From Intoshia linei (Eukaryota; Animalia; Orthonectida), in assembly GCA_001642005.1 (NCBI GenBank), contig LWCA01000029.1, forward strand, positions 9,914-73,913: a DNA stretch of 64,000 nt, given 5' to 3'. Of this stretch, positions 48,026 through 63,156 are shown piece after piece. Made by a program: the position numbers and the translations under genes. The stretch's first letter is position 1. The number at the start of each line of letters is the position of its first letter. The notes under the pieces were generated by a model. The model did no database searches. It was not told the origin of the DNA and was given only the letters and a program-made list of their open reading frames with translations.

Positions 48026-51000
48026 TTATGTAATGTGAGGAACCGACAAAAAACAACCCATTGTTGTGAAAATTGTTAGTGCAGCAAACAAAACTAGGCA
48101 AAATCTGTCAATTACCATTGCAGCAAATTTCCAATCGTGAACCTCTTCTTCAATTTGATCATTATCTTTGACTTTGTGTGTTATATAACGTAATTCATTT
48201 AAAATTGATAAAAGTTCGTTTTTTATGTTGTACATTGCGTTTTGATTTTGATTCCAAGGGCTACTCCTTGGAATTTCGTTTAAGGGAATGGCATTGTCGA
48301 TATCTTTTATGTTGCTAATTAAACTTAGAGAAAATTGGCTTCGTGATTCTAGATTTCGCATTTTTGATTTTCGTAGTAAAAATTGTCTTGATAAATCTTT
48401 ACCGGGTCTAGTTAATCCCAAAATACATGCCATCCAGTCACATATTAAAATGCGAACCTAAAATATTGTATTTATTTAATTTTTAAAAAATTTTATGGTA
48501 ATTTCGTTTTTTGTCGTGAAAATATCAATTTTTTAATTTGACATTTATTTACGATCTGGACGGTAAAGACTGACTTTTAATTTTGTTTTTGAAATTTCTA
48601 CTCAATTTTCTAAATAATCAGGCACTTATTTCGAGCAGCTTTTACTTTGTGTAAGGATATTTACTTTAAAAATGTAGGTTTTATATTGGATTAGTTCCCA
48701 TAATATAACACATAATGATTATCACAATTTATAATGGATTATAATTAGGGAAAACTTTTTATAACTAAAATAAGAAAAATGTAACCTATAATAAAAAAAT
48801 TGTAACTTTAAAAATAAATACATTTAACTTAAATTTTAAACCTATAAAAAAATTTTTTAAAAATACAAAATACATGCTTTTTTTCAGTTCATTTATGTTG
48901 GTTAATAATTAACGTAATGAGTAGACAAAAGGTATTAGACTCAAGAAAGTTATACCATATTAATGTTAAGATTTATTATGGTACAATATTAAGTATTTTT
49001 AAATGTTATCCGGTGAAAAATTTCTTTATTAGTCAACAGTTTATTTAACATACTAAAATTGCTCTCAATGCCATTAGAAGTCGATGGTCCATTTCTTAAT
49101 TGGCTATACAAGGTTGGAGGTTTAGATTCATCCAAAGCCAATATTATTGATTCAATGTCATTCGTATTTAGTCTTTTGTTAATGTATGGTTTTATATTAC
49201 AAAAGTCCGAAATAAATTCAATATTCTTTATTGAGTCATACGACTTATTAATACTAAATGACTTCTTTGGCATTTCAATAATATTTATTAGATAAACATA
49301 TCCAGATAATTCGATTAATTCATTATATAATACAGTTGCAGATACAGCTCCTCTAGCTCGTTCGACGATTACACCATTGCCTGCGATACCATTAATAATA
49401 TTTTTGATTAAATTTAATTTGTGGATGTAGTATACACTCGCTTCAACCCAACCACCGTTCATGTTAGTATTAATCTTTTTACAATCAAAGATTATCATTA
49501 CATTATGAGGACTTTTCAAGGTACCAACTATATTATTAATGTACTTCACACCATTTACGTCAGTTTCATTCAACATTAAAGAAATCAATTCATTGGAGCA
49601 CACACTGTAATTCTTTCAATTTTACTCAAATATAATTGATCGACTTTACCACGACAGTTATTTTCAGATGGCAAAGTTTTTCCCATACCAGCGAACAAAT
49701 TCTTCGATTGTTTGTTGTTTAATTTATATAAGGGTATGTCCGCAGATAGAAAAGCTTGTAGTACTACTTGTAAAATCATTTTTAATTTTGAAAAATGTTT
49801 TGATCCGAACAGTATTATTGAAAGCAACATGTTTAGCTGAACCTCTATGTACCTGTATATAGTATAACTTTTCAAATGAGACGTAACATTTACATTTTCT
49901 ACAATATAAATTGTTCTCTAACATTTGAAATTCCATTGGATATAGTTTTAAAATATTATTGATTTTTTCCTGTCGTAATTTTGGTATTTTTGGCATACCA
50001 TGATATAATCCTTTACTTATATAAAAGTTAAAGTCTATGTGTAACCATTTATTGAAAAAATTGACAGTGGCAGTTTTTCCCAGAGTGTGTTTTTATCTAT
50101 TTGTCAGTTTCAGAATTTGAGTCCTTCATGGTCAAAAACTCAATTTCCCCTTTAAATTCAAAAATTTAATAAAATATACATTCTGGGACGCGTTTTAAAA
50201 TTATTAAAATTGTCGTTAATCTCAGCCTCAGAAACTCATACCTTCATGGTAAAAACTCCAAATTACCCTTTGTTTTAAAAATGAAACATGTCCTAAAATT
50301 TTTTTAAACATAAATTTTGGGATAGTTTTTAAAATCATAAACATTATCATAAATGGAAACATCAAAAAAGATATTTTTCACTATCAAAACCAACATTACC
50401 ATTATTTTTTTAAATGAAAACAGCCCTAGAGTTTAAAAAAATACAAGTGGTACAGTTGTATCCTGTTAAGACACGCAAAAAATTTCAATCTGAATAATGA
50501 CGTCTTTAAGGTCAAAAAAGTACTTTCATAATTTGTAATTTTCGAAATGTAACTTTATTAACTTTAAAAATTTTTAATTAGCTAATTAATATTGATAATA
50601 TCCGTTCCATCTTTCATGAAATTTAAAACTATTTAACATATCAAAAATTGACTTTCATAACTTTTGCTTGCCCTAATTATAATTAATTTTTGTTGAATTA
50701 CCCATTTGGGCATTTTGCACATTGAGGGTGTTCTATGGTGTAAATTAAGTATAATAATGGTCATCACTACTGACACGGTACACATTAACATTACAGACTG
50801 AAAATAAATGCCTAAATGAATTTAAATTGTATTTATACATTCTAATCGTTTACCTAATATTGGAACTGACATTGAAGTTGACGGTACGGATTCTGCTACA
50901 ATTAAAGAAAAAACGCTCAAAGATAATAGTATCGTTACTCCTAAATTAATAAATATAGCAATAATATTTTAGACGTGCAGACAATTTAAATGATTCTTTT

Positions 51001-54000
51001 TAAATAAATTTAAATTGTGTTGTACGTGGTATATACAATGTATATTATATGGTATGATATAATTTAATGAATTAATCTGAATTGTTATTTTCATTTAGTC
51101 TAGAATCTAGATTCAAGTAAATATAGATGTAAAAAATTTTATTAGTATTTGTTATTTACCATTAAAATTAATATTGCAATAATTTTAATTTACAATTAAA
51201 GGTTAATATTGAAATATACCCAATGATACTTTTTCACCGGAATCGGGAGGTAATAGGAAAACCATCATGGTTAATGATGATATCAAAGCACATGGTATTA
51301 TTAAATTAAATCCATAATATAAAGCTCTACGTCGGATGTGAATTTTGAAGGTTATGTCAATATATCTACACAAGTTTTAAGGTGACAAGTATAAGTTGTG
51401 TATAATTACTGTTCAGGGCAACAATCGTATTTTTTCACATGTCGCATTGCTGGAACGTCTAAATAAAATTAAGTTATTAATCAGTGGCGGCTCGTAGACA
51501 AAATAATTTGTGGGGCTTCAAGAAATTTTTTTTATAACATGTAAGAACTTTAATATGTCTACTATTATAATAGTATATTATTATAATACTACTTTAGTAA
51601 TACATATACAATATGTATTATAACATTTTATAAAATTTTTCAGGGCTCATTGTACAATTGAAACTGTAAATATTTACATATAATAATATATTAGGCATGG
51701 GAAACTTATGACTAGCTTGAAAGATTTGATGCGTAATTTGATATATTTCGAATATACAAAAATTTAAGAAATACATTCATTTACAATGCTAATCAGGGCG
51801 GTGGAGGGCTATACGCGAGTCTAATATTTAAATTCATAGATAATTTTTTAGTTATGTCAAAATTATCCTGGAATTAAAATTTTATATTGAATAATGATGA
51901 TACCAAGCTGTGATGTGTAAATACCTCGACTGGACACACAGTAGCATACTAATTTAAAAATTTAATTTAAACCTATATGGGTTAGGGTAAAAATTTTTTG
52001 ATAATTTTAAGGGCGAGTAGTTCTTAATCGATTGATTTAAACAAATTTAGGAATAATTAGCGATAATAAATTTAAAATGCTGACGCAAATCCAATTGCCT
52101 TTTGTTGTTAAATTTGTTAAATACTTTGCGATTTATTTACTCCTCTGGGGTGATTTAATTATAAATATGTTAAGTACCTATTAATAGCCATTCTCCACTT
52201 TCTTGATAAGCACTAATGTCGACAGTATCGCTCTTTTTAATTAAGTTTATTTTACCTCCATCATATGACCATGAACCAAACTAAATATTTTTGTAACGTT
52301 TAAATATTCGTACCATTCTAATTAATCGTCAATTAATTTCTATAAGGCACATTTCCAAATGTTAGTACATTAGGAATAATGATTATTTTATATTAAAACC
52401 CATTAATTCTAGTTTTAGAAAAATGGCTAAATCTCATTAGTTTGTTTTTTCTTATTTAAAGTTTATAATTTTAATTTTTAATTAAAAAATATTTTAAAAA
52501 TCTACATAAGTAGATGTACATTGCATGTTTTAAAAATTTAAAAACTCTATTAATGTCATTTAATCACTAATTAAGACAAAATTTTGGTTTGGTAAAAACC
52601 AGTAGTTACATTTAGAAATATAGTGAAATCCGAAAAGTAATCGTGTTTTATATGTTAGATTTTTCGCTGATCCATCACTGTCGTGAACCAGTCACTAGTA
52701 GTCACTTACTACAATACATACTTCAAATCTTGCCATTACTGGATAATGCGCAAAAAAATTTCTTCCCACTGTGCCATATGAAAAAAGGATTTAAAAACCA
52801 CCGATCTACTATACATAATAAAAACCTTCATGTAGCAAATTTGATCATCGAAAGGAAACCAGGTAATATCTATTGAACATGAACTTATGTATAATCCAGG
52901 TGGAACCCAATTGCATCGACCATCCGAATAAACCACTATATTTGTTGGAAATTTGCTGTCAATATCTTCGTCAGCGCTAAATTTTATATTCTTATTTTTT
53001 CATATTGTTTGAAAAATTGTACAGTACATGTAGTGTATGCATGTCAATAATTTATTTTTAAAAAATATAATTTAGCCAAACCTTTAGGTACAATATCCAT
53101 TATATGGTTTTATAAATTGTCTACCCATCGATGGTAATGCTTGTTAATTTATAAACCATCTCAGAATTTCGGTTGTATACAATTTTAGTACTTTCTTAAT
53201 TTTTACAAAAAAGGTTAATTTGGATTTTGGCCGTAAATATATAAGACTTTGAAAATAAAAATTATCATAATATGGATGAATTTAAAAACAAAGTAAAATT
53301 GGGGTCTTTAACCTTAAAGGACTCAATTTCTGAAATTGAAACTTGTGCTATGACAAAAATCTCGAAAAACTAATAGAAATTTGTTATTTTTAAAAAAATA
53401 TTTTTCATGCCTTGGTCCCCCCCAAAGTAATAAATAAATATAGTTATTTTTTTCGCATTAATTATTTCAAAATCGCTGAATCTACAAGAAATTTATAATA
53501 TCATTTTGTATAATGTTTAAATTTTGACTAAAGTTCTCAATTCTCGTTTTTAAAGTCTCGTTCTTTATAATCGAAATTCGGATAATAATAATAATTAATA
53601 AATATATCTTAACTTATATAATATGCTACGCGATTTTTGTTTGTGTGTGTGTGTGGTCAATTTATTGAAATAACTACCAGTCTTAGTATTTGATAAAGTC
53701 TACATTTTAATTACAGTTTTTTCCGGAACGTATAATAAGATAAATATCAACCTCCCAAACTCACACCTTACGGGTCAAAAACCCAAATTGTCCCTCTTTT
53801 TGAAAATCAAACGAGTTGGAGAATTTAAAAAAATATATAAGCTGATGCGGACTTTAAAATCATGTACATTATCATACATATCATTATACATTATTTAAAT
53901 TTAAAAAAAAAGGATCTTCAGGGCCAAAACCACAAATTACCCTTCTTTTTTTAATGAAAACAGCCCTAGAATTTAAAAAAAATTACAGGTGTTACAGTTG

Positions 54001-57000
54001 TATCCTGTTAACACACACATGTCACGGTCAAAAAAGCATTTTAGTATTCATATTTTTTTTCGAAATATTTTATTAACAAAAAAATGTGAAATAATTAACT
54101 GTCCGAAAATTAAAAAAAAGATTAGTCTCATAGACCTTATTCCAGTTGATATAAATACAAAAGTTCAACCAGAGAAATCTACGCATTCCCTATGAATTTT
54201 AATTTTTAATATATTATTAACCAAATTTTTCAAATATTTCAATTAAAATAAAAATTGAAAATGCAAATATTGATCCTACAATTTCAAAAAAAATGTGCAT
54301 TAAACGTTTACACATTTCCAATAAAGAAATATGGGTGAAAATAGATATAATTCATTCCTTCGGAATTTTTTTCATTGCTACGCAATTTTTAAATTTCAAA
54401 TTTTAATTTTTAAAACATTTTGTATAAAATTTAAATTATAAAACTACAGTAACGAATTTATAAAAGTTCAATTTTGATACTAACTTATAAACGTGTTATT
54501 TTTTAAGTCAAAATTGTTTAAAATTTATTTTATACCTCAATGTTCCATTAATGGAACACTTATAACACGGTGCGCATTTTGAAAAACACCTAACATTGGT
54601 ATATCACATCAAATAAAACTCACCTTCACAATTAAAAAGAGCCATATATAACCGTCGGTTCTGGTCGCTAAGATATTAAAAACTAGGCTTGAACATTATT
54701 ACTTATTTGTAATTTATGGCGTTAACGTTCACATGATTTATTTTTTATATTACATTAACTTGTGTATTTATCAATATTGAATTAAGGCGAAAAAATATTT
54801 TTTTAATATATACATTTTTTTTCCGTCTATGGGGGTAAAACCACCGTTTTTAGAAAAAAAGAACACCTAACACGTGACGTATGATATACATACTCAACAT
54901 ATGCATGGTCATTAGTCCATCTTCTGCTTATAAAATTCAGGTCGTATTAAATAATTACGAGTAATTTAATAAATAAAAAAAAATATAATATACAACAATT
55001 AAATATTTACTTATGATATAATGATTTTACAGTCCATAGATAATCACATATCATACTTATATCATGTTTTTTTGTATCTGCTTTCAAATAATGACAATGT
55101 TTGGTGGAATTTTTCGCCGTGTTCGTCAGAAAATCTACCACAGTTTGCTGCGAACATGGAGATATGAGCTTGTAGAAAGTGCATCTTAATGGAATACAAA
55201 CAATTTATATTTTCATATGCGTCTATCAGTATACCTATATCATCTACATAAGATTCTGCTCGATAATTCCCCAAAAAATTATCTATTACTCCTAAAAGAT
55301 AAAATTAAAATATGTATTACATTAATATATTAATAGTATAACTAATTTACGTTGTAGAAAATTCCAAGCATGAAGTTGCACCGAGACCCAGTAACTATTC
55401 CAGCTATTATTTTGGCTTCTGAAAATGGCAAAATCTGTTTTAATATTGGATTTATTCCTTTTGATTTTTGTATACAATTCAAAAATTGCTTTGCCAGATC
55501 CAGTTTAATATGGAGTGGCCGCGGTATCAGAGTATCAGATGAAACTAGAGGGTCGTTTTCTATGCTAAATTCATGTTTTTGCATATTGATTCTATTAAGC
55601 CAACTGATCTTTTTATAGTGTTGTTTACGATCTCTCGTATCAAACAGACAATATGGACAACCATANTTCAAATAATGACAATGTTTGGTGGAATTTTTCG
55701 CCGTGTTCGTCAAAAAATCTACCACAGTTTGCTGTGAACATGGAGAGATGAGCTTGTAGAAAGTGCATCTTAATGGAATACAAACAATTTATATTTTCAT
55801 ATGCGTCTATCAGTACACCTATATCATCTATATAAGATTCTGCTCGATAATTTCCCAAAAAATTATCTATTACTCCTAAAAGAGAAAATTAAAATATGTA
55901 TTACATTAATATATTAATAGTGTAACTAATTTACGTTTTAGAGAATTCCAAGCATGAAGTCCATTTTTATTTAAAGATTTTTTGAAATTTTTACTCATGA
56001 ATATATGCTTCAATTGAGGCCCAGTAACTATTCCAGCTATTATTTTGGTGTCTGACAATGGCAAAATCTGTTTTAATATTAGATTTATTCCTTTTGATTT
56101 TTGTATACAATTCAAAAATTGCTTTGCCAGATCCAGTTTAATATGGAGTGGTGGCGGTATCAGAGTATCAGATGAAACTAGAGGGTCGTTTTTTATGCTA
56201 AATTCATTTTTTTGCATATTGATTCTATTAGGCCAATTGATCTTTTTATAGTGTTGTTTACGATCTCTCGTATCAAAAAGAAAATATGGACAACCATACT
56301 TGACATACCCTTTACCAATCCCATAAACAATGCTGATCATCTTAAAATCCATGCATAACTTCAAACTGTTTAATGATGTATTTAATAACTTTAATATTAT
56401 TTTGATAACATCATATGTTTCTTTCAATGAAGTACTGTATGCAACAGGGATAATAGGGTATATATGCTTATTGTGTATAAGTACAGCTTTGATATTGTAA
56501 TTACAAGAGTCAATGAAAATNAAACAATGCTGATCATCTTAAAATCCATGCATAACTTCCAACTGTTTAATGATGTATTTAATAACGTTAATATTATTTT
56601 GATAACATCATATGTTTCTTTCAATGAAGTACGGTATGCAACAGGGATAATAGGGTATATATGCTTATTGTGTATAAGTACAGCTTTGATACTGTAATTA
56701 CAAGAGTCAATGAACATAAACCAATCCTTAGAACAATATTTAAATCCCAATTTTTTCATTAGACGGTCGACATCTACACAATACGTCAAGTTCAGATCTT
56801 TATATTTTGCAAAGTAATCCATGTATTCTTTATTTCGAACTCTGTGCAGAGATGGAGAAACAAAATTTGATACATGCCATTTGTTCATAGTTTCAATTAA
56901 AATTATAGATTCCCTTTTGCTTAATTTGAGAATTGATATCAGATGATCGTATTTACTTTTATTGTCTTCTCCATTAAATATTTCAGGTGAAACATATAAA

Positions 57001-59053
57001 TCATCGTCAAATGAAGAATCTGATGTAGTTATAAATACATCATTTTGTCTTCTCTTGGGTATTGGAATCGGTTTTGAACATGATGCTACATTTGGCAAAT
57101 GTTTATTTTTCAATTTACTGTTAAATGAAATATCTCTGCATTTGCAAAAATAGCAATCATTTTTTGAACCAGGGCATGTCCATGATTAAGGTTTTTCGTA
57201 TACCCAGGAGTCCAGATATTTTTTATGTATTTAATATCATAGATACTTTCTAATGTATCCTTTAATTTTCCGTCAATTGGATATTTCTTTTGTTACTAAA
57301 TATTCTGTGACCGCACATGTAGCAATATTTATCAGCATCCAAATGATATTTGCAATCACGATACATGTGTAAAATAAAAATATAATTGAACTTTATACAA
57401 TAAACTAATTGATATTATTGTATGGAAAAATAACGAGTTACGTATACGACGGTTTTAAAATAATATTAATTTAAAACTATAATTACAAATAATTATGACC
57501 TCGTCACACCTTAATATTTATACATCAAATCAACATGAAAGTATCGATTTAATGATATAACACAAGTTTAAGGGTTTTTCAGAATGCGCACCGTGTAATT
57601 AGCGTTTATTAATTGACTTATAAAATTATTCGAATTGAATTATTGCCATTAAGCAAAATTTATCATGTATTAACATAAATTTTAAATATTAAAATTTAAA
57701 TATAATTCAAAATAGTAAGCTATCTGGGTGCGGACAGTAAACGGTTAATAAAATTTAATAAAAAATACGATTTTAAATATTCATGGTAAAATCGATTTTT
57801 ACCAATATTTTTTTGAAAAATCCACTTAATCCAACCCAAAAATAAAAAATTCGATTTTACCAAATCTTATAAGAAAAAACCTCTGATTTCAACCCTACAA
57901 TAAACATTCAATTTTATCCACCCTTTAGGGAAAAATACCCTTTTTGCAACATTTTTTTAAAAAACACTTATTTTAATATATAATAAAAAATCAAATTTTT
58001 ATATTAGCCAAAAAAGCAATGTTACCATTACTACCCTTCACAACATACTTATGTGAATTAGGCTTTTCACGCTGATGTATTTAAAAAACTATTATCGAAT
58101 TGGACTAAATATGTTACCGTATATGCGCATAGCTCTATAATCCTGCAAACCAAACTGGACAAAATTATTGAATAGTAAACAGTCACATATATCAGACTGA
58201 ACAAAAATAAATTTTGTTTTTTAAAAATATTTTCGACCGCCCAAAAAATTTGGTCCTTAAAATAGTTTGAAGACCACTTTTATAAATTTATATCAAGTTT
58301 AATATTGAATAAACTGAATAATTCTACCTGTTGTACATTAATATATCTGGTGTCCAAATGAGTTTGGCAGGAAGCCGAATGCTGGTAACATTTCCGTATT
58401 CAGTTTCATTCCAACTGAGTTTATAATCATGCCATTCCTATAAACTTTATAAAATATAAATTAGATTTATACATAATTGAGCCACAAGTTAGTGTGCAAC
58501 ATTTCGCTTTTTTCATCCTAAATATAATTTAACTCGAAAATAAATAAAAACAACAATAAAATGCATGCATCTACTGGTACGGAACAGACATGAACATCAA
58601 CTAACCAAAGCTATAATCTGCTGCAAAGTAATGCCAAATTTAACGACCAGAGCGTCTTCTTCTCTACTAACAGGTCTAGCCAAACTATTGTATTTACGTC
58701 GAATAATAACTTCGTCAATTAAATTTTCCTCGTGTTGTCCACTCAAGACACCTAAATGGCAGATGATGCATTTTATTTGAATTAAAATGTTAAATTTGGT
58801 ATTATTACCAAATCAACAATTTGTTGAAGAGTTACGCCAAATTTAACTATAACACTAGACGATTCATTCGCCACCGGTCTAGCATATTTGTTTAACTTTC
58901 GATTTAAAAAAAGTTCATTTATTAGTCTTTCTTCCTGATAACCACCTGAACCTATTAGTTTAGGTTAAGTCACAGGTTATTTGGGATATGTAATTCTATA
59001 AACTTACATTTCCAATTTAGTCCGAGTAAAAGAGAAAAAATTAAAATTTTCAT
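48026..59053 (-). CDS. Nicotinic acetylcholine receptor alpha subunit, alpha7-like (gene A), complete, 473/474 aa, alternative exon 2a/2b
   Basis: Exons 59053-59008, [58951-58809 or 58751-58606], 58517-58473, 58437-58328, 52976-52826, 52280-52178, 51458-51410, 51365-51220, 50940-50854, 50811-50702, 48457-48026 join in frame. Signal peptide, WTPDILMYN, Cys-loop [23 protein letters not shown], loop [24 protein letters not shown]. Exon sizes 45/110/(49+146=195)/87/110 match CHRNA7 as recalled. Confidence 0.96.
48989..49996 (-). mobile_element. CGGBP1-like hAT transposase pseudogene in an nAChR intron
   Basis: Frameshifted ORFs: BED-like LYCRKC...H....KH; [14 protein letters not shown]...LPSENNCR; C-terminal [12 protein letters not shown] dimerisation-like motif; apparently internally deleted. 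Confidence 0.75.
53607..54400 (+). mobile_element. Helitron family copy, 3' end not seen
   Basis: A|TCTTAACTTATATAATATGCTACGCG followed by (TG)n; long similarity to the 9590-10692 and 28553-29362 copies. Confidence 0.8.
54566..57595 (-). mobile_element. Chapaev3 (CMC-Chapaev) DNA transposon with TIRs and TSD; disrupted and duplicated transposase
   Basis: TIR CACGGTGCGCATT(T/C)TGAAAAAC at both ends; 3-bp TSD TAA; transposase motifs [67 protein letters not shown]. Confidence 0.9.
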
Positions 59054-59683: not shown

Positions 59684-62326
59684 TTAAGAAAAATGAGGAA
59701 CGGACATAAAACACCCGAGAGTTGTAAATATTGTCATAAGAGTAAAAGTAATTAAGCAAAATCTATCAATGACCATAGCTGCAAATTTCCAGTCGTTAAT
59801 TTCTTCATCAGATTGATCGCCATCCTTAATTTTATGAGTAATAAATCTAATTTCATTGAGTATTTCCAATAATTCTTTTTTAATGATTGATTCAGTAGTA
59901 CTATGAAATTTAAATGCTTGATTGGCTTGTGTATCATAAAGCAAATAATCATTTTGTGGAATTGCGTTATCCATATTTGTAATGTTGCTAATTAAACTCA
60001 CTGAAAAGGGTTTTTGTGATGCTAATTTTCGTATTTTAGATTTTCGCAACAAAAATTCTCTTGATAAATCTTTACCAGGTCGATGCATGTGAAGAATCCA
60101 GGCTAACCATTCGCATACAACAATTCGTATCTAAACTTGTTTAATTGGCACTGTGTGTTTGTAATGTTATAAAAGTCTACTCTATGGATAGACGGTCTTA
60201 ACCTTATTTCTTTATACAATTTTAAATCTTAAAATTAACGTCACTTATAAATAAAATATTGCTTAGTGGTAGACCACCACTGGTGGTCTATATTTAAAGA
60301 ATAAAGGTTTAATTACCCAATTTGGCATTATGTACATTGTTGGTTTACGATGATGCAAGTTTAATATAAATATGGCCATAACCACTGATACTGTGCACAT
60401 TAACATGACAGTTTGAAAGTATACTCCTTTTTTAATATAAATAATATAATACATGATATAATGTATGATGTAAATTAAAATGTAATATTATTACATATAA
60501 TAATTACCTACTATTGGAACCGACATGGAAGTAGTTGGCACAGAATCCGCTACAATTAATGAAAAAACGCTTAAGGATAGCAATATTGTTACACCTATTA
60601 TTTAATTATTGGTAAATAGTCATTAAATTAAGCATGACAAGTTTGCAAATTTTTTGATGTAAATCGCCCATAATAAAATTTTTTAAAGTTGAACAAAAAA
60701 TTTCATTTTTTTACGTACCCAAAATATCACTTTAAAATATTTAATTTTTTTTTGGAATCTTTGAAACTCTTCATATTCTTCAAATACCTAATGAAACTTT
60801 TTCGCCGGAATCTTGAGGTAATAGAAACATTATCATTGTTAATGACGAAATAAGTGCACATGGAACAATAATATTAAATCCGTAGTATAGAGCTCGTCGC
60901 CTTATGTGTATTATAAATGTAATGTCAATGTATCTAAATTGGAAATTTATGGTTATATTAAAATTAAAAGCAAAACTCTTCTGGACAACATTCATATTTG
61001 ATTACGTTTCGTGTGACAGGAGTTTCTATAAAATTAATAATACAATTGAATCTACATTCTAGAATATTGTTAAGATGATTAATTTAATCATAATTATCTA
61101 TAAATTATTATTATAATACTATAATAATAATAATAATAACACGGATACCACACTGTGTTCACGTTTATTAGAACATAATGATAAATTGTTTTTAAAAATT
61201 AAAAATTAGTAAAATATTGAACAACTTTGGAAATGTAAGAAAAGCTCTTAGAAGACCTCATATAAAAAAATTAATATAGAAAAACGTTTAAAGTGGGCTC
61301 GGTCATATATTAAAACTGATTTCTTGACTGTAATATTCACTGATGAAATGAGAACTACGCTAGACGGACCAGATGGTTGGTCTCGAGGTTGGGTATGTGA
61401 CTCAATGCAAACGCCTGAGCAGATGAGAGACAAATGGGTGGTGGTGGGTTATGATCTGGGCAGCTATCTGTAATGGTTCATTAATTGGCCCTATAAGAAT
61501 CAAAGATGGTATAAAGATTAATTCCTACAATATAAACTATTATTGGAAGAAGGGCTATTTAAATGGATAGGAAACGAAGAAGAATTTAAGCGTCAAAATT
61601 TTATAGTTCAACAAGATAATGCCCGTCTCACTCATCTGCATTGACGAAAGAATTTTGGAAAAATAAAGGAATTCATGGTGATAAATTGATGATTGACCAT
61701 ATTTATGCTGCCTTATTCCCCTGATTTCAATTGTATCGAGAATTTCTGGTCAATTATCAAACGGTAATATTTATTTTAGACGTATATATTCTGGTGGTCA
61801 TCAATTTCAATGTAAAAATGATTGATGACGCAAAATTAAAATTGTCGCTAGTGAAGTCACAGAAGCTGAAATATAGAAACTTACAAGTTCAATGGATAGC
61901 AGATTAATCAAATTGTTAGAGAAACAAGGTGGTCAAATATCTATATAGTAATTAAAATTATTTTTTATCAATTAAAATCAAAAAAAAATCACTTTTAACA
62001 AATATTCTAATAACTGTGGACAGTACTGCATAATTCGATTTTTATTAATTGAAAAATGTAAGTGATGATTTCAGTTTCAAAAAATCAAAGTAAAATATAA
62101 TTTACTAAGATGCTCTTCTCATTTCACTCAATTGTAAGTACTTAAATCATTGGTGAAATATATTAATGACATAAGTTAGTTATGTTTTAATAAACGTGAA
62201 CGCTGTGTAAAAGTAAAGTAAACCAACTATAAGCCATTCACCACTTTCTTGGTATGTACTTCTATCTATTACGTCGGCTTTTTTTGTTAAATTAATCTTA
62301 CTTCCATCATATGTCCAAGATCCAAA
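59684..62326 (-). CDS. Second alpha7-like nAChR alpha subunit (gene B), 3' part; 5' exons presumably beyond the window
   Basis: Exons 62326-62224 (FGSWTYDG), 61025-60977 (YECC), 60933-60788, 60594-60508, 60426-60317, 60130-59684; internal exon sizes identical to gene A (103/49/146/87/110). Confidence 0.93.
61151..62207 (+). mobile_element. TRT (DD37E)-like Tc1 element, decayed
   Basis: ~28-bp imperfect TIRs CAC(T/A)G(T/C)GTTCACGTTTATTA.AACATAA; [59 protein letters not shown] spacing cannot be counted because of indels. Confidence 0.8.
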
Positions 62327-63156
62327 CTAAAAAGTTTTTAATGTTGTAGAAAAGTGGTATGCAATCTATCTAGTTCTAAGTGCACACCCTGCGGTCGTGA
62401 GATACACTGTACAATGTACACCCTGATCTAGTTGAAAGGATCGTTGTTTTGAAATGTAATATAATTCAAGTCAAAATAAAACATGAGATGGATACGGTTG
62501 GTGCGTAAATTCTTGTAACAAATCGGTTATTATGTTTGACCGTATCAGTACATTTACACGGGATATACAAACAAAATATAATTAAAAAATCAATTTTTAA
62601 TGATAGTTCATTATAATGAATAAATCGAATTAACTTAATTATACATAAACCAAATTTAAGACAAATGGCCCTGCCTAAATCTCAAAATTTCATCATGAAT
62701 CTGGTAAATAATTCTTTACAAAAATAAGAAGACAATTACAAATAATTGAAAAGATATCTGCGAAAAAATATAATATGGAAATTTTAAAGCTTTAATGTAG
62801 TACAGTGGTTAAGTTCCAGATTGGAGTCCAAAACTATAACCTGGCGAACCGTGAGATTCAAATAAAATAGTAATTTTCGGAGATAATATTTATTAAGATT
62901 ACAATCTATATCTGATTTAATTTAATATTATTAGTTTTACTTGAAGTCTTGTTTATATCCTAGAATGTAATAATAAAGTTATAGTTTAGTGTAGTCAGTG
63001 CTACTCCTCCCTCTTAAGATTTTTAAAAGTCATCACATAATCTTTTAAAAAGGATGGTTTAGTAATTTTACGATAGGGACGTTGAGTTTTTAATTTGATA
63101 GGATTTTTTTTGTATAATATTTTGTGTTATGTGAAGTTAAATTGGGTACAGATTTA

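Follow-up and report, generated by a model that had tools for sequence, protein, structure and literature searches.

Tandem copies of exon 2 in an alpha7-like nicotinic acetylcholine receptor gene of Intoshia linei, predicted to be mutually exclusive

Mutually exclusive exons are a known route by which alpha7-like and alpha6 nicotinic acetylcholine receptor (nAChR) genes diversify. The insect alpha6 gene carries the mutually exclusive exons 3a/3b and 8a/8b/8c in Drosophila, Tribolium, Apis and Bombyx (PMC1919356). Here we describe a similar arrangement at another exon in a 64,000-nucleotide (nt) stretch of DNA from the orthonectid Intoshia linei (GenBank assembly GCA_001642005.1, contig LWCA01000029.1, positions 9,914 to 73,913 of the forward strand), referred to below as the window. 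An alpha7-like nAChR gene on its minus strand, gene A, has two homologous copies of exon 2 (2a and 2b) between the signal-peptide exon and exon 3 (the DEK exon), and these copies are probably used as mutually exclusive alternatives. Each mature mRNA would carry exactly one of them, and the two resulting subunits, of 473 and 474 amino acids (aa), would be identical outside the N-terminal helix, the loop after it and strand beta1.

The insect and Intoshia genes have in common tandem homologous exons in an alpha7-like alpha gene, and the insect choice likewise swaps a segment of the ligand-binding domain. The exon involved is different: insects swap the 45-nt DEK exon or the exon of the second transmembrane segment (TM2), whereas in Intoshia it is exon 2 whose alternative usage is predicted from sequence. 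The Intoshia exon lengths are not multiples of three and double inclusion breaks the frame, whereas insect exon 3 measures 45 nt; a doubly included form of insect exon 3 has been reported in complementary DNA (PMC1919356). Spiralian RefSeq isoforms offer a second comparison. Those of Lineus longissimus (X1-X6), Tubulanus polymorphus (X1/X2), Aplysia californica (X1/X2) and Biomphalaria glabrata (X1/X2) are also of equal length, differ by a one-exon block and belong to the same receptor family, but the swaps fall at the DEK exon, exon 4 or the exon spanning loop C to the first transmembrane segment (TM1), and none falls at exon 2. The Lineus longissimus proteins P0282, P0173, P0283, P0280 and P0281 are such equal-length swap isoforms. 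Nemertean and gastropod swaps at the DEK exon indicate that the insect-type exon-3 alternative is also annotated in these animals. The spiralian isoform genes are of an "ERPV" type and belong to another orthogroup than the "ARPV / DEKNEML" genes of Intoshia. Among the proteins fetched, the only pairs that differed solely in exon 2 were cross-species insect pairs, and a limited literature search found no exon-2 pair described in nAChR genes. Papers on the lophotrochozoan nAChR expansion do not mention alternative splicing.

The paired exons of gene A

Gene A was modelled as 11 exons on the minus strand, with AG/GT at all junctions; the joined model served for local translation only and searches were made exon by exon. 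Its 5' part, in window positions, is arranged as follows.

59008..59053, minus strand: exon 1, with the ATG at 59053 and the signal peptide; 46 nt, phase 1 at its end, GTAAGT donor
58952..59007, minus strand: intron 1, 56 nt
58809..58951, minus strand: exon 2a, 143 nt, phase 1 to phase 0, AG before and GT after
58752..58808, minus strand: intron between 2a and 2b, 57 nt
58606..58751, minus strand: exon 2b, the homologous alternative to 2a, 146 nt, phase 1 to phase 0, AG before and GT after
58518..58605, minus strand: intron between 2b and exon 3, 88 nt
58473..58517, minus strand: exon 3 (DEK exon), 45 nt
58328..58437, minus strand: exon 4 (WxPD region), 110 nt, separated from exon 3 by a 35-nt intron

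Two homologous exons between exon 1 and the DEK exon had been proposed in a preliminary description of this DNA, and the coordinates, peptides and AG/GT ends all match that proposal. Nucleotide identity between 2a and 2b is 59% and amino-acid identity 53% (24 of 45 aligned codons), and both exons match positions 1-40 of the Pfam domain Neur_chan_LBD, with 23.2 bits for 2a and 22.6 bits for 2b. An assembly error or a chance pair of open frames can be given almost no credence as an explanation of this likeness: 59% nucleotide identity does not fit collapsed or duplicated reads, and tblastn within the window aligns the two copies at E = 2e-13. Exon 2b aligns with the first ~45 residues of mature nAChR subunits in solved structures, and we take the exon-2 segment, from structural knowledge, to be the N-terminal helix, the loop that follows and strand beta1. 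In the loop after ARPV, exon 2a encodes an N-E-S sequon, and exon 2b has the acidic run SREEDA there.

The reading frame admits one copy at a time. In the local splice model the frame stays open for 473 aa with 2a alone and for 474 aa with 2b alone; with both exons included it stops at codon 66 and with neither at codon 16. The joint of 2a with 2b reads GTG TCT TGA, in which TGA is the third codon of 2b, and the joint of exon 1 with exon 3 gives T+GA. The expectation that either exon alone would yield a full-length subunit, and that both or neither would shift the frame, is thereby borne out. It is very improbable that 2b begins a transcript of its own, or that both exons are included in frame through other splice sites, since the open frame of 2b has neither an in-frame ATG upstream nor a signal peptide, and a direct 2a-2b joint soon meets the TGA. 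Use of 2b as the first exon of a separate transcript had been named at the outset as an outcome that would contradict exclusive use, and the missing upstream ATG weakens it.

Codon comparisons show that both copies have been kept by purifying selection on the encoded protein. Differences between 2a and 2b are distributed 16/11/28 over codon positions 1/2/3 (p = 9e-4). Against exon 2 of the tandem paralogue gene B (B2; described below) the counts are 10/10/28 for 2b and 14/9/24 for 2a, so that 2b is at least as skewed as 2a. In a neutral simulation, with the observed number of changes placed at random in 20,000 trials, 13.4±2.2 identical residues were expected against the 24 of 45 observed (P < 5e-5); none of the trials reached 24 identical residues and 5.5% remained stop-free. 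In a dN/dS-type comparison of 2a with 2b, the proportion of nonsynonymous differences (pN) is 0.32 and that of synonymous differences (pS) is 0.71. This comparison, with the codon-position skew and the simulation, upholds the earlier suggestion that selection acts on both copies. Synonymous sites are saturated in all comparisons, including that of exons 3-9 between gene A and its second paralogue, gene C (pN 0.10). Repeat detection found no similarity between 2a and 2b more than 2 bases past the exon ends, and the flanking introns have no detected likeness. The third-position skew, the simulation and the saturation of synonymous sites together indicate that the duplications are old and that 2b has not drifted neutrally over that time.

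The locus has several features of an exclusive exon cluster: adjacent homologous exons that encode the same protein segment, with the same phases, canonical splice sites and selection on each copy. Nearly all tandemly duplicated exons are spliced mutually exclusively according to a statement cited in PMC1919356, and this generalization favours exclusive use of 2a and 2b.

Relatives of exon 2 and the age of the pair

The I. linei assembly comprises 41.6 Mb in 3520 contigs, and the window ends at the end of its contig (C3002). Three minus-strand paralogues (A, B, C) lie in tandem, with gene A last; gene B is divided between two contigs, and gene C is complete on the second.

59687..62335, minus strand: 3' part of gene B (exons 6-10, to the fourth transmembrane segment, TM4)
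Contig C1436, 208-560: exons 1-3 of gene B, with a single exon 2

In genes B and C alike, exon 2 is single and 146 nt long, with the DEK exon 35-36 nt after it, and none of the other exon-2-like matches in the genome is doubled. The annotated protein GenBank OAF65243.1 (P0042; L015, contig C1436, 327-8431) is chimeric: its exons 3-10 come from gene C and its exon 2 from gene B, and several exons of the ligand-binding domain are left out.

Relatives of exon 2 in other animals were sought among 1.84 billion proteins with a profile built from the four exon-2 peptides of Intoshia. Matches were mainly short open frames that represent single exons of other animals. Exon 2b is about 52% identical to 2a, 63% to B2 and 57% to C2 (exon 2 of gene C), and its best match anywhere is a foreign exon (P0005) with 70% identity; judged by this match, 2b is no degenerate copy.

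A scan of metagenome contigs gave 80 loci, three of which have three tandem exon-2 copies on one strand.

L016: JAAUXT010095583.1, triple exon-2 array
L042: JAAUYG010295079.1, triple exon-2 array
L048: JAAUXW010014065.1, triple exon-2 array

The guanine plus cytosine (GC) contents of these contigs (50%, 43% and 37%) differ enough to indicate three genomes. All nine array copies have a pyrimidine tract, AG and GT, and their lengths of 140, 152 or 146 nt are all ≡2 mod 3. In L016 (7232-20134), exon 2 and exon 4 are each present three times, the Cys-loop/FGSW exon twice and the DEK exon once; the three exon-2 copies come before the DEK exon, and this arrangement marks the arrays as lying within one gene rather than in tandem genes. 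Within this sequence class, three loci extend 2 kb or more upstream, and all three have the array. These arrays resemble the Intoshia pair closely: they involve the same exon in the closest gene family, are tandem, have AG/GT ends and lengths ≡2 mod 3, and their last copy, of 146 nt and "NRLARP..KE.DALEVKFG" type, is like Intoshia 2b. They differ in having three copies against two in Intoshia and introns of 0.3-1.5 kb against 57 nt; L016, unlike the pair in gene A, also repeats exon 4 (three copies) and the Cys-loop/FGSW exon (two copies). Arrays in three other animals give independent support for reading 2a and 2b as paired exons. A check on whether gene B and related spiralian alpha7-like genes share the duplication had been suggested in the preliminary description; genes B and C turned out negative, with a single exon 2, and three metagenome contigs carry arrays.

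The array is absent from the oligochaete-type contigs L033, L065 and L067, which have a single exon 2 each. L033, L060, L065, L067 and ~70 other loci with names in Ga... fall into three paralogous exon-2 classes (IKYARPVL, QKLARPVR and NYTALARPVAEE), with a single exon 2; the Ga... contigs probably come from host DNA in worm-symbiont metagenomes. In another nAChR subfamily, the open frames P0021, P0029, P0038 (Biomphalaria glabrata KAI8777133.1), P0101 and P0112 have two successive exon-2-like segments; a signal peptide is fused to the first, and a conserved RPVPDEQ stands before the second. In molluscs, these two-segment frames may be a further case of tandem copying of the segment.

In a tree of 41 exon-2 peptides, with 44 usable alignment columns, 2b joins P0005 at a support of 89/96 and the third copies of L016, L042 and L048 at 87/78, and 2a joins Intoshia B2 and C2 at 93/95. 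Derived residues are common to 2a, B2 and C2 and are missing from 2b. This grouping and these shared residues favour a duplication that predates the triplication of genes A, B and C, and the pair is probably older than that event, with the 2b type lost in B and C. On this view the pair would go back to an earlier array of exon 2, of a kind that other animals also have, with 2b as the counterpart of its last member; genes B and C would have retained an exon of the 2a type only. Exon 2 length was considered as a marker and rejected, as 146 nt is common to 2b, B2, C2 and the third array copies.

A younger origin must be weighed against this history. The duplication could have occurred within gene A after the three genes split, with rapid divergence of 2b thereafter, and the likeness of 2b to the third array copies would then reflect retention of, or return to, residues of the family consensus. 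Two copies are found only in gene A, the alignment is short (44-45 columns), and a sister relation of 2a and 2b is not rejected by an approximately unbiased (AU) test (p = 0.22), so that descent from an ancient array is probable rather than proven. Against a late duplication stand the derived residues of 2a, B2 and C2, their grouping to the exclusion of 2b, the placement of 2b with P0005 and the third copies, and the occurrence of arrays at the same exon in three other genomes. We hold a duplication within gene A to be possible, if somewhat unlikely; it concerns the origin of the pair and not its use.

RNA pairing and the choice between exons

In exon 6 of Dscam, docking and selector RNA structures are associated with exon choice (Graveley 2005, as cited in PMC1919356). 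The Intoshia locus likewise has complementary intronic segments placed where they could decide whether a variable exon is available. Three segments are relevant.

58760..58777, minus strand: upstream arm of a stem, directly before the 2b acceptor, over the likely polypyrimidine/branch region
58555..58576, minus strand: downstream arm of the stem, 30 nt past the 2b donor
58789..58804, minus strand: intronic element, +5 to +20 after the 2a donor

The two arms form a stem of ~19 pairs with one bulge that brackets 2b and whose pairing would loop out this exon. The duplex energy is -25.3 kcal/mol, which none of 300 shuffles reached, and the stem is present in the minimum free energy and centroid folds of the 291-nt segment, the overall fold of which has a z-score of -0.56. 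The intronic element is complementary to the VKFG-coding stretches of both exons, at 58837-58847 in 2a (11 of 11 positions) and at 58629-58644 in 2b (15 of 16), with pairing energies that were reached by 18 and 27 of 300 shuffles, respectively. Hypothetically, the element could enclose the 2a donor by binding to 2a, and it could place most of 2b in a loop by binding to 2b. Pre-mRNA pairing may bias exon choice, a proposal with weaker support than exclusivity through the reading frame; the candidates are the 2b-looping stem and the element after the 2a donor. Intron 1 pairs with the other introns no better than shuffles do.

The Intoshia arrangement differs from that of Dscam. No shared docking site that pairs with a selector before each exon was found; there is only the bracket stem around 2b, which lies only in the top 2% of native controls. 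Docking/selector-type control finds no support here in conservation or covariation. A steric block by the short intron between 2a and 2b was also considered and rejected as unlikely, since its 57 nt equal the median intron length of I. linei (57 bp; PMC6543705) and exon 3 is followed by an intron of 35 nt. An intron of median length should be spliceable.

Whatever biases the choice, the reading frame would at least enforce exclusivity, because transcripts with both exons or with neither stop early, at codons 66 and 16. Such transcripts would be discarded, by nonsense-mediated decay as we infer, or would give no receptor. A more far-reaching proposal is that exon 2 of the "ARPV / DEKNEML" orthogroup is an old, conserved exclusive cluster of lophotrochozoan type, present in Intoshia in a two-member version, with the choice made by a two-way RNA switch. 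The element after the 2a donor would pair with the VKFG stretch of either exon and would be aided by the stem that loops out 2b. We regard this combination as doubtful. If it is true, the exchanged segment comprises the N-terminal helix, the loop with the glycosylation site and strand beta1, and one of the most reduced nervous systems known has kept such a cluster.

Several results weigh against exclusive use of 2a and 2b. The case for it is built from genomic sequence and comparison, with exon usage predicted, and the exons of the arrays in the three other animals are likewise known from genomic sequence. No Intoshia fragment with 2a, 2b or an exon 2 junction was found in the protein collections searched, and the annotated protein of gene A is absent from the matches in them. 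Genes B and C have neither room for a second exon 2 nor a trace of one, and these paralogues work with a single copy. Of 1500 same-geometry samples drawn from the window, 1.9% do at least as well as the bracket stem, which by this measure is only moderately unusual, and flank pairing at the arrays of other species does not exceed shuffles and includes nothing comparable.

Some of these results would suit an alternative in which only one of the exons is used today, and the other, functional for a long time, was silenced too recently to have acquired stops or lost its splice sites. Both exons are known here from genomic sequence, genes B and C manage with one exon 2, and pN between 2b and C2 is 0.28, above the 0.10 of exons 3-9. 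Other observations speak against such a relic. The third-position excess against B2 is alike for 2b and 2a, and 2b keeps AG/GT and an open frame in a genome of 27% GC, in which random sequence soon meets stops. Exon 2b is also closer to foreign exons than to 2a. We consider recent silencing of one copy unlikely, and mutually exclusive use of 2a and 2b remains the probable interpretation.

Receptor context and meaning of the pair

The remainder of gene A was traced through open frames, tblastn and the reading of junctions. Its parts, in window positions, are as follows.

48026..52976, minus strand: rest of gene A, based on open reading frames, tblastn, junctions and Pfam
52976-52826, minus strand: Cys-loop exon
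52280-52178, minus strand: FGSW exon
51458-51410, minus strand: loop C exon with the vicinal CC, encoding KKYDCCPEQ
51365-51220, minus strand: TM1 exon
50940-50854, minus strand: TM2 exon
50811-50702, minus strand: exon of the third transmembrane segment (TM3)
48457-48026, minus strand: last exon, with the intracellular loop, TM4 and the stop

A vicinal Cys-Cys in loop C is the defining mark of an nAChR alpha subunit. Gene A has this pair, a Cys-loop of the form C-x13-C encoded from window position 52879, and all four transmembrane segments TM1-TM4, in agreement with its initial designation as an alpha7-like nAChR alpha subunit. Exon by exon, gene A covers positions 1-183 of PF02931 and positions 1-30 and 101-233 of PF02932, so that both Neur_chan_LBD and Neur_chan_memb domains are present. 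With the paralogue protein P0042 as query, the matches are annelid nAChRs at 49-54% identity, followed by alpha7-like, acr-16-like and alpha6 proteins. Among named proteins, those that belong to the "ARPV / DEKNEML" group come from the annelids Ridgeia, Lamellibrachia, Dimorphilus and Hirudo.

Intron 4 of gene A (window 52977-58327) is 5.3 kb long; a repeat that contains long open frames is present in it in two partial copies. Single N's occur near 56521 and 55665 inside the intron. The repeat looks like a transposon, perhaps with assembly joins.

In this receptor family, the exon exchanges described so far affect the DEK exon, exon 4 or the loop C/TM regions, and an exon-2 swap would alter a different part of the subunit. 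The parts encoded by exon 2 bear on assembly, surface expression and the subunit interface, and the sequon is present in 2a and not in 2b. Arraying of the same exon in three other animal genomes suggests that exon-2 arrays have been overlooked in this receptor group and may be an old feature of it. Intoshia has very few neurons and a 42-Mb genome, and retention of a second exon copy under these circumstances argues for a real function. The Intoshia pair would offer a simple system in which to test the role of the N-terminal segment.

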